Shown: positions 24,413 to 30,292, counted from the stretch's first letter. The stretch is DNA of 40,576 nt from Octopus bimaculoides (GCF_001194135.2 NC_068984.1:97574201-97614776), one strand, 5' to 3'. Translations and numbers: made by a program. The notes: generated from the sequence alone by a model not told the origin.

Positions 24413-24470
24413 ATGCTGTACCAACTGTTACTAGTAATAGTAGCTATTTCATGCGTGAACAGCTACAACT
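24413..24470 (+). CDS. First coding exon (signal peptide) of the secreted pacifastin/VWC-like repeat protein
   Basis: accatcATG, then MLYQLLLVIVAISCVNSYN plus one T, then donor GTAAGT at 24471. The hydrophobic core and small-residue cleavage region fit a signal peptide. The phase-1 end joins the phase-1 acceptor at 28198 (T+AC = Tyr) in frame. Confidence 0.75.
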
Positions 24471-24757
24471 GTAAGTAAATTATACTGCTCCACATTGTTC
24501 ATTTCTGGTACATTCTGGTTAGTTATTTAGTTAAATCTATAAACGATTGTATTATTAAAATTCATTTTCACATTACATATATACATACATATATTTGTGT
24601 GTGTGTATGTGTGTGTGTGTGTGTGTGTGTAAAATTAAGAAAGAGAGAAACAAATTTCAAAGGTCGGTATTCATATTCATTCATTCCATTTCAAATTGTC
24701 GAAGTTCTCCACAATATACGTAGATGCATTCACATATATGAAATGGTAAAAATTCAT

Positions 24758-24908
24758 AAGAATTTATAAATATATAAATATACGAAGATTTATAAATATA
24801 TAAATATACAAAGATTTATAAATATATAAATATACGAAGATTTATAAATATATAAATATACGAAGATTTATAAATATATAAATATACGAAGATTTATAAA
24901 TATATAAA
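24758..24908. repeat. 26-bp AT-rich minisatellite, about 5.8 copies
   Basis: Unit gaagatttataaatatataaatatac. Confidence 0.92.
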
Positions 24909-25033
24909 ACTCATAAACATATAAATATATAAATACATAGATGTACTTGCGAGATTGATTGTCCGTATTAGAATCAATGAGGATAGATGAGAATGTATAA
25001 AATGATTTAAGAGGAATCCTGAATAAGTGAAAA

Positions 25034-25110
25034 GTCTGACGGCCGTTTCGGGAAGATATAAGCTGGTATGGGCGAGCTAGCTTCAACCATAGCAATCACC
25101 TCTACAGAGT
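25034..25110 (-). ncRNA. Hammerhead-like motif with extended helix II (A6U variant, weak helix I)
   Basis: ACT-CTGTAGA-GG...tatgg...ccata...CC(C)-GAA-ACGGCCGT-C-AGAC. Helix III is an 8-nt palindrome followed by C17, but helix I has only 2 bp. Confidence 0.5.
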
Positions 25111-25721
25111 TAAAAGATTTAAAGAGTTGTTAAAATTTTAAGAGACATGAAAGATTTGAGAATTTTTAAAAAACAAATGCTTTGTCAGCTCATACTGTTC
25201 ATGCGGATGATATAATAAGGATTAAAGTTAAATGTTAAGACACATTACGACGCTATATATAATAGAATTTTAAGATGAAACCAAAATATGAAGGGTGACT
25301 AGATTAAAATCCTATAGGCTAATTATTTTGGGGGAAGAATTTATAAGTTGAAAGATATTTATGTCTACAGGTAATTATGACATGAGATATCTTAGACTGA
25401 ATTCTTTATTGTACATTTTTAATTTTTTGATGTGGGTAGCATGAGATTATATATATGTATGCATATATGTATGTATATATANNNNNNNNNNNNNNNNNNN
25501 NNNNNNNNNNNNNNNNNNNNNNNNNNNNNNNNNNNNNNNNNNNNNNNNNNNNNNNNNNNNNNNNNNNNNNNNNNNNNNNNNNNNNNNNNNNNNNNNNNNN
25601 NNNNNNNNNNNNNNNNNNNNNNNNNNNNNNNNNNNNNNNNNNNNNNNNNNNNNNNNNNNNNNNNNNNNNNNNNNNTATATATATATATATGTATGTATGT
25701 ATGTATGTGTGTATGTTCATA

Positions 25722-26010
25722 TGTATGGCCAAGTGGTAAAGAAGCTTGCTTTACAACCAGTGGTTTCGGGTTCAGTCCCACATGGCGGTACCCAAGACAA
25801 GTGTTTTTTACAAATCATTGGTTGACCAATGACCTTTGATGAATTTTGTAGACGGAAACTATGTACAAGCCCACTGTATATATTTATGTATGCATGTGTA
25901 TTCACCATCACTTGACAACGTCCCCATAAGTTAGTGAATCGGCAAAAGAGTCGATATAAGTACCCGACTTAGAAATAATACTGGAGTCGATTTGTTCAAT
26001 TAAACCTGTC
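25722..26010 (+). mobile_element. Older, diverged copy of SINE family 1
   Basis: tggccaagtggtaaagaagcttgc...gggttcagtccca...gtagacggaaact...catcacttgacaac...aatcggcaaaagagtcgat...gtcgatttgttc. Confidence 0.75.
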
Positions 26011-26041
26011 TTATATATTACGATTAAAACCCGAATATCTG

Positions 26042-26042
<1 letters not shown>

Positions 26043-26083
<41 letters not shown>

Positions 26084-26345
26084 CGCACACACACACACAT
26101 ATTTGTTAAACCTTGTCCCTCCTGTGTTTTCTTTTTGTGTATATATTTGTATTTATGTGTGTGTATGTGTGTGTGCGTGCCTTTATATTTATGTATGTCT
26201 GTATGTATATGTTTTTTTTCTTTGAGTTTCATGTATGTATGCATGTATGTATGTATGTATGTATGTATGTGTGTGTGTGTGTGTTTGTGTGTGCGTCTGT
26301 GTGTCTGTGTGTGTGTGTGTCTGTGTGTCTGTGTGTATCTGTGTA
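26043..26345. repeat. Compound (TG)n/(TATG)n tract
   Basis: Direct observation. Confidence 0.9.
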
Positions 26346-27470: not shown

Positions 27471-27515
27471 AACAATAATTGATGAGGAACATCCTTCCGC
27501 CGTAACATATGTTTA

Positions 27516-27519
<4 letters not shown>

Positions 27520-27612
<93 letters not shown>
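27520..27612. repeat. (CT)n microsatellite
   Basis: Direct observation. Confidence 0.97.
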
Positions 27613-27614
<2 letters not shown>

Positions 27615-27693
27615 ATGACAGTATACTCAGCATATGAAACCTTCGCTAGACATGTTCCAATAGATGGTATAACCTAGAAACAGCTGTCACGGA
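27607..27693 (+). ncRNA. Degenerate hammerhead-like motif with long helix II (U4C)
   Basis: TCTCT-CCGATGA-CAGTATAC...GTATAACCTA-GAA-ACAGCTGT-C-ACGGA. The 8-nt palindromic helix III and C17 are present, and helices I and II are imperfect. Confidence 0.35.
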
Positions 27694-28025
27694 AAATTTA
27701 AAGTTTTTGTTGCACAGCTAAAATAAAAATTCTTGTCACGCATTGACAAACAGCTTGTCTTTTCTACTTTAAACTGTAACTACCGACTCAAGGAGAAGTC
27801 ACTTCTAGCGGCTTCGGATAAGGCAGTCACTAAATCACACTTTCCACGGCAGTTCAAAACGGAATGTTAGGGTATATATATATATATGTATATATGTATG
27901 TATAAATCTTTAGTATGGAAAACAGAAAGTAAACGTACCGGATTCTGTCATTAAGAAGCATAAAATTTAAAGAATAATTGAAATAAATTCTTGTAATGTC
28001 AGACGTTGAAGTTGATATAGTGCAT

Positions 28026-28090
28026 GTATGTATGTATGTATGTATGTATGTATGTATGCATGTATGTATGTATGTATGTATGTATGTATG
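28026..28090. repeat. (TGTA)n microsatellite
   Basis: Direct observation. Confidence 0.93.
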
Positions 28091-28197
28091 GGTGTACGTA
28101 TATGAGAAATTACCTTGGAATATAAATATTCAATTTGCAGTAGAAAACATTGTTGTGGTTAATTGAAATAACTATTTACTGTTGATCTTTTTTACAG

Positions 28198-28323
28198 ACC
28201 AATGCATACATAATGGAATAAGATATGAAGGAGCATTTAAGATCGACTGCAACACGTGTGTATGTGAGGAATATGGCAAAGCAGTCTGTACAAATTTACG
28301 TTGTGATTATGGACAGGGATCTA
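28198..28323 (+). CDS. Second coding exon, 5' part (first six-Cys module), running into a gap
   Basis: Polypyrimidine tract plus tttttttacag acceptor. Reads (Y)QCIHNGIRYEGAFKIDCNTCVCEEYGKAVCTNLRCDYGQGS. Confidence 0.82.
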
Positions 28324-28738
28324 NNNNNNNNNNNNNNNNNNNNNNNNNNNNNNNNNNNNNNNNNNNNNNNNNNNNNNNNNNNNNNNNNNNNNNNNNNNNN
28401 NNNNNNNNNNNNNNNNNNNNNNNNNNNNNNNNNNNNNNNNNNNNNNNNNNNNNNNNNNNNNNNNNNNNNNNNNNNNNNNNNNNNNNNNNNNNNNNNNNNN
28501 NNNNNNNNNNNNNNNNNNNNNNNNNNNNNNNNNNNNNNNNNNNNNNNNNNNNNNNNNNNNNNNNNNNNNNNNNNNNNNNNNNNNNNNNNNNNNNNNNNNN
28601 NNNNNNNNNNNNNNNNNNNNNNNNNNNNNNNNNNNNNNNNNNNNNNNNNNNNNNNNNNNNNNNNNNNNNNNNNNNNNNNNNNNNNNNNNNNNNNNNNNNN
28701 NNNNNNNNNNNNNNNNNNNNNNNNNNNNNNNNNNNNNN

Positions 28739-30292
28739 CAATATCAAGAGGGTCAAAATTTCGCTGATGCTTGCAACACTTGCCGTTGTATAAACGGTCA
28801 AGTAGATTGTACAACAAGAATCTGTCAATGTACATATCAAGGACGAACCTATAATATTGGCCAAAGATTTGGTGAATGTGATGAATGCCAATGTTTGTCT
28901 AGTGGCACAGTCCAGTGTTCTAACAAGCCATGTAAATGCATTTATAACGGAAATACCTACCGAATTGGCGAAAGATTTGCAAACGGCTGCAATACATGCA
29001 CATGTAAAATCGATGGTAGTGTAGACTGCACTACAAATCCATGTACCTGTACTTACAATCATAGGGTTTATAATATTGGGCAGAAATTTAACGATGACTG
29101 CAATACTTGTACATGTCAAATTAACGGTCAAATTGAGTGCACATATAAAACGTGTCGATGTACACACAAAGGACAAACTTATAAAATTGGTCAGAGATTT
29201 CATGAAGATTGTAACCAATGCCAATGTTTATCAACTGGATATGTTCAATGTACAACCAAAGCTTGCAAATGTACGTACAACAACCAGATTTACAATGTAG
29301 GTCAAAAATTTAGACAGGGTTGTAATACATGTACGTGTGAAGTGAACGGTAGAGTAAGCTGTACTAATAACCCTTGTAATTGCCTTTACAATGGAAACAC
29401 CTACCAAATAAGTGCTACATTTAGAAAAGACTGTAATACGTGCACATGTAAAGCCGATGGAAGTGTAGACTGCACGACAAATCCATGTACCTGTACTTAC
29501 AAAACCAGAGTTTATAATTTCGGAGCACAATTCAACGATGACTGCAACACTTGTACATGTCAAAATAACGGTCAAGTTGAGTGCACATATAAAACGTGTC
29601 GATGTACACACAAAGGACAAACTTATCAAATTGGTCAGAAATTTTATGAAGATTGTAACCAATGCCAATGTTTATCAACTGGATATGTCCAATGTACAAC
29701 CAAAGTTTGCAAATGTACTTACAACAACCAGATTTACAATGTAGGTCAAACATTTAGACAGGGTTGTAATAGATGTACGTGTGAAGTGAACGGGAGAGTA
29801 AGCTGTACTAATAACCCATGTCAATGCCTTTACAATGGAAACACCTACCGAATCGGAGATTCATTTAGAAAAGGCTGCAATACATGCACTTGTAAAATCG
29901 ATGGTAGAGTAGAGTGCACAACAAATCTATGCACCTGCAATTACAACGGCAAGCATTACGACATTGGTTCTATATGGTTTAATGATTGCAACAAATGTCA
30001 GTGCACTTCTGGAGGAAGAGCGGTTTGTGAACAGAAACCATGCACGAAACCCTGTATACACAAAGGAAATACATATTCCGCTGGCCAAACATTTAAAGAT
30101 GACTGCAACACCTGTAGATGCGGACAGTTTGGTCGAGTATCCTGTACTAAAATGTACTGTCCCCCAACCACGTGCCAATATTACGGAAAAACTTACAAAG
30201 AGGGACAAACATTTATGACTCAAGATAGATGCAACGTTTGTCGATGTTCAAATGGAAATGTCAAGTGTACCAAATACGATTGTTATAAACAG
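28739..30292 (+). CDS. Tandem pacifastin-like / VWC-like six-cysteine repeat region of a secreted protein (14 modules after the gap)
   Basis: Open frame from the gap edge with no stops. The ~37-aa unit is C-x-Y-x-G-x2-Y-x2-G-x2-F-x3-C-N-x-C-x-C-x3-G-x3-C-T-x3-C, and its C-terminal part matches the pacifastin signature C-N-x-C-x-C-x2-3-G-x3-4-C-T-x3-C. It ends at the consensus donor CAG|GTGAGT (phase 0); read-through would stop at 30311-30313. Confidence 0.92.

Follow-up and report, generated by a model that had tools for sequence, protein, structure and literature searches.

A class of pacifastin-like domains with an "ancestral architecture" has been described, in which an N-terminal beta-hairpin is present and the first two cysteines (C1-C2) are separated by 13-20 residues (Rodriguez-Aguilar et al., Sci Rep 2026, PMC13388995). 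Such domains occur outside arthropods, with Mollusca being the second largest group (109 proteins), and they are often found in tandem or in multidomain proteins whose linkers are depleted of dibasic sites (PMC13388995). Among the P1-P1' pairs over-represented in ancestral and mollusc domains are K-M and K-Y, and P1 is commonly occupied by Thr (PMC13388995). A pacifastin-related precursor of 42 domains, TAPP-1, is known from Trichoplax adhaerens (Breugelmans et al. 2009, PMC2689174). Pacifastins have also been listed among the proteins of the octopus posterior salivary (venom) gland (PMC7693380, PMC5554399), and a table of an O. vulgaris ink-proteome paper assigns one peptide to an O. bimaculoides pacifastin-domain protein. 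Here we describe a gene contained in a 40,576-nt stretch of the Octopus bimaculoides genome (NC_068984.1:97574201-97614776, hereafter the window), which codes for at least 15 modules of this type. The gene maps to approximately 97,598,613-97,604,492 on the plus strand of CM046604.1 (GCA_001194135.2; record position = 97,574,200 + window position). Positions 1-15870 of the window are 100% identical to that assembly around the gene LOC106881070, which gives the placement. It is a further member of the family described in molluscs in 2026, and is of a kind already known. We consider, with moderate confidence, that its product is best explained as a poly-pacifastin that would be secreted and left unprocessed, with a minority of its modules inhibiting serine proteases and the others serving as scaffold or binding surface.

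An earlier note on this DNA had seen in it tandem six-cysteine modules of a pacifastin/VWC-like type. The pacifastin call was right. The 518-residue open reading frame (ORF) that holds all the visible modules but the first was compared with Pfam profiles, and Pacifastin_I (PF05375, curated cut-off 27.9 bits) scored 240 bits (E=1e-72) over 14 stretches, against 176 bits (E=1.3e-52, also 14 stretches) for VWC (PF00093); FnI_RECK gave E=2.7e-29. Scanned one by one, all 15 modules matched Pacifastin_I (best E 1.5e-11) as well as FnI_RECK, and 13 of them matched VWC. In the profile comparison that the earlier note had proposed, the modules did not score as VWC only, and Pacifastin_I was the higher-scoring family overall. 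The signature C1-x(n)-C2-N-x-C3-x-C4-x(2-3)-G-x(3-6)-C5-T-x3-C6 is present in 14 complete modules and in one truncated module. The support for assigning the modules to the pacifastin-like domains is strong. The C1-C2 spacer is 14-18 residues wherever C1 is visible, longer than the 9-12 residues of the conventional (arthropod) architecture, and two additional strands precede the core in an AlphaFold2 model. We have called the modules "ancestral" because they combine this N-terminal beta-hairpin with a C1-C2 spacer within 13-20 residues. The long spacer, with its YxGxxF motif, does resemble VWC as had been noted, and the modules do have the hybrid look that was attributed to them; this look is not a new state, but corresponds to the published ancestral architecture (PMC13388995).

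We have compared the gene with the described systems, taking as P1 the second residue of the C5-C6 loop. The mollusc ancestral proteins, compared through their description in the paper on 394 proteins (PMC13388995), share with it the six-cysteine core, the hairpin, the tandem array, linkers free of dibasic sites, the K-M and K-Y pairs and the frequent Thr at P1. Unlike them, the octopus modules have extremely short joints (C6-x-C1), and at least 14 of them are encoded in a single exon. TAPP-1, from another phylum and likewise compared by description, is similar in being a very long array of pacifastin-like type with almost no dibasic sites. The arthropod inhibitors (locust PMP-C/LCMI-II, SGPI-1/2 and the crayfish pacifastin light chain; structures 1GL1, 2XTT, 2F91 and 2VU8) have the same C-N-x-C-x-C...G...C-T-P1-P1'-x-C core, but they have a C1-C2 spacer of 9-12 residues and no beta-hairpin. 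Insect domains are usually freed from their precursors at dibasic sites, whereas KR, RR, KK and RK motifs were found in no linker here. The P1 residue is mostly Arg, Leu, Ala or Phe in arthropods and is Thr, Asn or Gln in 11 of the 15 octopus modules.

Among the sequences searched, the closest overall was P0001 (37% identity), from a Joint Genome Institute (JGI) environmental sample, whose short contig holds the whole ORF and whose modules also have C-x-C joints. O. bimaculoides itself has paralogues, annotated as "VWFC domain-containing protein" (A0A0L8H5Z2/A0A0L8H649; P0003, P0004) and "kielin/chordin-like protein" (P0013), which lie on a different chromosome, CM046611.1. They carry 11-15 modules per protein, with the pattern CxYxGxxYxxGQxFxxxDxCNxCxC...G...CTxxxC, as in the gene described here; in contrast, they are only 31-34% identical to it and have linkers of 10-22 residues with a high content of Thr, Pro and Ser. 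The exons of P0013 have 168 nt and phase 1 and encode one module with its linker each, and they extend over 37 kb.

The relationship to VWC, to the E modules of VWF and mucins and to fibronectin type I was also examined. These families share with the octopus modules a small, beta-rich, disulfide-bonded fold, and the F1 pairs are the best structural match for the tandem arrangement. The VWC matches, however, reach only positions 1-42 of the 57-position profile: the C2xxC3xC4 motif is present, but each module has six cysteines and not ten, and there is no CC dipeptide in the 518 residues. Since the matches are partial and the CC pair is missing, we conclude that the second VWC subdomain is absent and that these are not chordin-type repeats. 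Pfam detected no VWD, C8 or TIL domain in the gene, so that the VWD-C8-TIL context of E modules is lacking; PF23244 "VWF" matched 8 of the 15 modules and module 15 had a weak TILa match. Regarding fibronectin type I, the modules have six cysteines in 36-37 residues, against four cysteines (two disulfides) in about 45 residues, and Fn1_2 matched the ORF weakly (E=0.41). No CCxxC is found in the modules, and their CN-x-C-x-C and C-T-x3-C motifs are pacifastin signatures. Pacifastin-like domains are bonded C1-C4, C2-C6 and C3-C5.

A structure prediction, suggested earlier as a check, was performed with AlphaFold2 on modules 4-6, using a 53-row alignment of three-module segments. The model had a mean predicted local distance difference test (pLDDT) score of 91.1 and showed five strands per module, with a two-strand N-terminal hairpin (e.g., E2-4 and E7-9) followed by a three-strand core. 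Foldseek superimposed the predicted modules on solved pacifastin inhibitors with deviations of 0.8 Å over 29 residues (2VU8_I), 0.8 Å over 28 (2F91_B), 0.9 Å over 29 (2XTT_A) and 1.5 Å over 30 (1GL1_I). The superpositions of the model on 2VU8, 2F91 and 2XTT, which are pacifastin-protease complexes, had 41-48% sequence identity.

The gene model was then considered from its 5' end (Table 1). A stop codon at 28164-28166 closes the frame of the first module upstream, so that the coding sequence must start in a preceding exon that ends in phase 1. Between this stop and the first Cys codon there is a single AG, that of the acceptor ttttttacag/AC (28188-28197, exon from 28198). The 15.5 kb upstream contain 468 phase-1 candidates for the missing exon that run from an ATG to a GT. 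We have screened them all for a donor matching 7 or more of the 9 consensus positions and for a hydrophobic core of nine residues with a mean Kyte-Doolittle value (KD) of at least 2.3. The only candidate satisfying both was the 58-nt exon that the earlier note had pointed out (KD 3.31); its donor, GTAAGT, begins at 24471, directly 3' of it, and it fits in frame to the first module through the one possible acceptor, with T/AC (Tyr) as the junction codon. Phase 1 at this junction is also the phase of the module exons in the paralogue P0013. The exon encodes the core LLLVIVAI, and both VNS/Y and AIS/C agree, as judged by eye, with the -3/-1 rule. From these sequence features, the short first exon would supply a cleavable signal peptide and the protein would be secreted. 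In the mussel homologues the signal peptide ends 1-4 residues ahead of C1, as is predicted for the octopus gene. The TATATAAAG box is a candidate promoter element of the gene; no other ATG occurs between this box and the ATG at 24413, which has A at -3.

Table 1. Coordinates of the gene and of its main features (positions counted from the first nucleotide of the window)
Feature	Position	Strand	Remarks
TATA-like box TATATAAAG	24306-24314	+	Read from the sequence; 107 nt 5' of the ATG
Exon 1, coding part, 58 nt	24413-24470	+	ATG; MLYQLLLVIVAISCVNSYN and one base of the Tyr codon; ends in phase 1
Intron 1, nominally 3727 nt	24471-28197	+	Contains assembly gap 25482-25675 and microsatellites
Intron 1 repeats	24762-24908, 27520-27612, 26040-26340, 28024-28101
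Start of large exon	28198-28323	+	Module 1, then DYGQGS into the gap
Assembly gap, 415 N (estimated)	28324-28738	.	Conceals the C1 end of module 2 and possibly more
ORF, 518 codons	28739-30292	+	Truncated module 2 (28739-28825) and complete modules 3-15
Super-repeat, two 444-nt copies	28937-29824	+	Four modules each; loops TTNP, TYKT, TTKA/V, TNNP
Module 14, most inhibitor-like	30053-30160	+	Loop C-T-K-M-Y-C; P1 Lys, P1' Met
Module 15	30173-30283	+	Loop C-T-K-Y-D-C; P1 Lys, P1' Tyr; C1-C2 18 residues
Donor CAG/GTGAGT	from 30293	+	Perfect consensus, phase 0; directly after the last module

Module 1 is complete, with C1-C6 at 28203-28304 and the loop CTNLRC, and reached 32.6 bits with Pacifastin_I when scanned alone. 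The ORF that follows the gap in the large exon contains 83 cysteines, corresponding to one truncated and 13 complete modules (5 + 13 × 6). The total is thus 15 modules, 14 with all six cysteines and one truncated at the gap, and the minimum of 15 given in the earlier note was correct. Each module is 36-37 residues long, and 11 of the 13 visible joints consist of a single residue (C6-x-C1). C2 is followed by Asn in 14 of the 15 modules (Asp in module 3) and C5 by Thr in 13 (Ser in module 3, Glu in module 13), with the C5-C6 spacing being four residues in every case.

Both edges of the gap lie within coding sequence, which ends in ...CDYGQGS on one side and resumes on the other with QYQEGQNFADAC, about 7 residues past the missing C1. 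The nominal length leaves room for approximately 3-4 further modules, for a total of about 18-19. A single continuous exon running across the gap with these 3-4 modules concealed is the simplest reading, and a plausible one; an intron is possibly hidden within 28324-28738. The other gap, in intron 1, is flanked by microsatellites. Both gaps are flanked by such repeats or by the module array, which is the probable cause of the breaks in the assembly. Three minus-strand ORFs overlapping the gene (28307-29224, 29231-29668 and 29927-30223) were rejected: a scan for the cysteine-module pattern found modules only on the plus strand, and we regard these ORFs as a side effect of the coding sequence opposite them.

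Part of the array is itself organized in a higher-order repeat. Tandem Repeats Finder reported a period of 444 nt, i.e., four 37-residue modules, with 2.3 copies at 87% identity: the two full copies are followed by a diverged, partial third copy at 29825-30043. The two full copies differ by a synonymous divergence (dS) of 0.29 and a nonsynonymous divergence (dN) of 0.084, giving a dN/dS of 0.29. Most replacements fall within the N-terminal hairpin, with hardly any change in the C5-C6 loops. An open frame of 518 codons within DNA of about 36% GC, together with this dN/dS and with cysteines in perfect register, argues for a gene under purifying selection.

From module 1 to module 15 the P1 residues are N, T, N, T, Y, T, N, T, Y, T, N, T, Q, K and K, so that a classical P1 is found in 4 of the 15 modules only (two Lys, two Tyr). 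When module 14 was searched against the Protein Data Bank (PDB) with phmmer, it matched the SGPI-1 variant in 2XTT (E=5.8e-9), with GQTFKDDCNTCRCGQFGRVSCTKMYCPP aligned to GQTKKQDCNTCRCGSDGVWACTRMGCPP. The linkers lack dibasic sites, and the protein therefore probably stays uncut. In the mechanism that we propose, the secreted chain would remain intact as a stiff, disulfide-stapled string of directly abutting beads, and in some modules the C5-T-P1-P1'-x-C6 loop would act as the canonical, substrate-like (Laskowski-type) loop of a serine-protease inhibitor. Modules 14 and 15, with Lys at P1, would be candidate inhibitors of trypsin-like targets, and modules 5 and 9, with Tyr, of chymotrypsin-like ones. 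The 11 remaining modules would provide mainly scaffold or binding surfaces. Taken alone, the inhibitory mechanism, which we derive from the loop sequences, is held more tentatively, at close to an even chance. The earlier note had suggested either a multi-headed inhibitor or a structural protein, possibly of gland, skin or egg-case secretions, and both functions are kept here as candidates.

Related modules were also met in bacteria. Many proteins of Myxococcota (e.g., P0046 of Sorangium cellulosum; P0054 and P0071 of Polyangiaceae) have tandem modules of the same type, separated by linkers of 2-4 residues, and some such bacterial proteins are fused to Kunitz/BPTI or Kazal domains. These matches agree with the bacterial pacifastin-like domains already reported (PMC13388995), and the tandem modules with their occasional Kunitz or Kazal fusions favour an inhibitor role for at least some ancestral domains.

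Several observations weigh against a partly inhibitory poly-pacifastin. In the Foldseek search of the PDB, the top matches of the model were fibronectin F1 pairs (2RKZ, template modelling (TM) score 0.48-0.50), followed by NEL, VWF and mucins; the resemblance of the model to the F1 pairs is real, but at the superfamily level only. A profile made from the 15 modules aligned over its full length with the VWC of NELL2 (E=1.4e-10) and with the E modules of MUC2, MUC5B, MUC5AC and VWF (structure of VWF E', 2MHP), which are non-inhibitory, and the insect pacifastin inhibitors covered only positions 11-37 of its 38. The Thr, Asn or Gln found at P1 in most modules is poor for classical serine proteases. 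All this could be expected of a purely structural or adhesive extracellular protein, of matrix, mucus, egg-case or cement, forming a rigid multivalent rod without protease inhibition. Such a protein would also accommodate the single-residue joints without processing sites and the composition of the ORF (Tyr 6.4%, rich in Lys, Asn and Thr; pI 8.5), and ancestral domains are often found in matrix-associated proteins (PMC13388995). Nevertheless, nearly all modules have retained the loop geometry and C-T-x3-C, the Lys loops of modules 14 and 15 are of textbook type, and other domains of matrix proteins (VWD, laminin G, lustrin etc.) are absent from the visible gene. We regard this main rival as serious, although unlikely. 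A chordin/kielin-like regulator of BMP/TGF-beta ligands would fit the Pfam VWC matches and the automatic name "kielin/chordin-like" carried by homologues in Mytilus, Saccostrea and O. bimaculoides. The partial coverage of the VWC profile, the six cysteines and the higher Pacifastin_I score speak against it; we have rejected it, as highly improbable, on the missing CC pair, which means that the C8C9xxC10 subdomain 2 is absent.

The gene model has its own weak points, and these bear on whether the locus is functional at all. The coding exon is broken by a gap. Coding positions 28200-28323 make 41 codons and one base and the frame resumes exactly at 28739, so that continuity requires a gap length of 2 mod 3 and the nominal 415 is 1 mod 3, one base off; since the length is only estimated, this mismatch is uninformative. 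No transcript or protein in the searched databases joins exon 1 to 28198, and neither the N-terminus nor the ORF has a close protein or transcript-derived match in the 5.8 billion sequences searched. At the 3' end no convincing downstream exon was found, the acceptor-like sites giving a 45-nt "intron" or adjoining gaps. If the terminal donor is left unspliced, the frame continues as VSKVFY to a TAG at 30311-30313, and no AATAAA or ATTAAA occurs before 31891, i.e., there is no poly(A) signal for 1.5 kb. Two more gaps and copies of a long interspersed nuclear element (LINE) lie downstream of the gene. In a locus so rich in transposons, a decaying or never-transcribed paralogue, whose ORF was kept by recent tandem duplication and whose signal-peptide exon is a coincidence, has to be considered. 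Against it, 518 codons are intact, dN/dS between the internal repeats is 0.29 at a dS of 0.29, all 83 cysteines after the gap are in register, and the signal-peptide exon is both unique and compatible in phase, with a TATA box and A at -3. In addition, the gaps in the coding exon suffice to explain why a predictor would have missed the gene. We consider a non-functional locus improbable, and retain the secreted poly-pacifastin as the best explanation.

The gene appears to be unannotated. The 518-residue ORF was searched against a collection of 5.8 billion proteins, including the NCBI and UniProt sets of O. bimaculoides, and nothing more than 46% identical was found; the best matches were 37-46% identical over part of the query, with no orthologue among them. 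For the spliced 61-residue N-terminus (signal peptide plus module 1), no candidate in the same collection shared even three 5-residue words. We therefore take it as a gene that is absent from the searched collection and that the protein sets of O. bimaculoides seem to lack. The omission is likely due to the assembly gap that splits the main exon and to the location of the signal peptide on a tiny exon 3.7 kb upstream.

The annotation of the relatives was also inspected. The region CM046611.1 41,443,257-41,500,817 (L001) contains at least two adjacent pacifastin-like genes, P0013 and a neighbour of 398 residues. The annotated start of P0013 is in the middle of a module, directly after a 3.4-kb assembly gap (6112-9532 of L001); a signal-peptide exon was sought upstream, where this gap occupies the region before the first mapped exon. 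The neighbour begins with a repetitive LFSWLFSK peptide, not with a signal peptide. Both annotated N-termini thus look wrong, and the annotation of the family is probably incomplete at its 5' ends. P0008, a "kielin/chordin-like protein" of Mytilus edulis, contains two occurrences of the same signal-peptide-like segment, one near residue 14 (KEFGNMIAILVLMLVSLNCVHA) and one near residue 120 (KEFGNMLKIFVLILVSLYCVHG), and both segments stop 1-4 residues before C1. Because of this duplication, the annotated protein may be a fusion of tandem genes.

The 518-residue ORF contains 54 Asn and 82 Ser+Thr and has no N-x-S/T sequon. Shuffling the non-Cys residues gave a mean of 8.7 sequons, and none of 5000 shuffles reached zero, a statistic that is overstated because the repeats are not independent. 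The homologues P0001 (82 Asn), P0002 and P0003 also have no such sequon, and N-glycosylation may be avoided across the family, judging from these sequences.

The window is AT-rich and has microsatellites and transposon fragments throughout, as well as nine runs of N. A Helitron-like element occupies approximately 2700-10100 on the minus strand in several pieces, with ORFs of the Helitron helicase-like and PIF1 types and a gap at 7895-8523. One of its ORFs (4104-4964, minus) is 100% identical to LOC106881070 of Octopus bimaculoides, an uncharacterized protein, and this "gene" is probably a transposon fragment. The retrotransposon calls were made by eye from translations. Two diverged copies of a retrotransposon without long terminal repeats (non-LTR) lie 3' of the gene on the minus strand (33100-35050 and 37550-39530), with similar ORFs in both (MEYGSASRVMAVRAV... 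and MEYGSVSRVMVARAV...) and reverse-transcriptase-like fragments; another such fragment is found upstream of the gene (19000-20700, plus). The repeats of intron 1 are a minisatellite of 26 nt, with 5.7 copies at 98% identity, a perfect (CT)46 run and long tracts of (GT)n and of (ATGT)n. ARAGORN detected no tRNA-like element in the window, and a suspected tRNA-derived short interspersed nuclear element at about 25729-25800 was not confirmed. Short interspersed repeats at 13927-14407, 14498-14680, 15390-15602, 18567-18731 and 23227-23339 are 85-96% identical to segments of the otherwise unrelated L001; the repeats common to both regions are dispersed repeat families.

A more far-reaching idea would be that the gene is an octopus-specific innovation, in which duplication of four modules within one exon produced a linker-free rod of about 19 beads, in contrast to the linker-rich paralogues with one module per exon, delivered in a venom/salivary or in an egg/skin secretion as a multivalent protease trap or fibre-forming inhibitor. 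We consider it distinctly unlikely. If true, the beads with Tyr, Lys, Thr or Asn loops would hold sites that bind proteases, and sites that do not, in a fixed spatial arrangement, and a multivalent "protease trap" or fibre-forming inhibitor of this sort would be without described counterpart.

The gene is a clean example of the ancestral architecture and does not change what is known of the family. With its near-linkerless modules in one exon and its mixture of Lys/Tyr and Thr/Asn/Gln loops, it would aid in testing the scaffold-versus-inhibitor model of the 2026 paper (PMC13388995). Pacifastins are recurrent and functionally unexplained in the secretions of cephalopod venom glands, and a complete, correctly started sequence would permit proteomic searches and recombinant tests.

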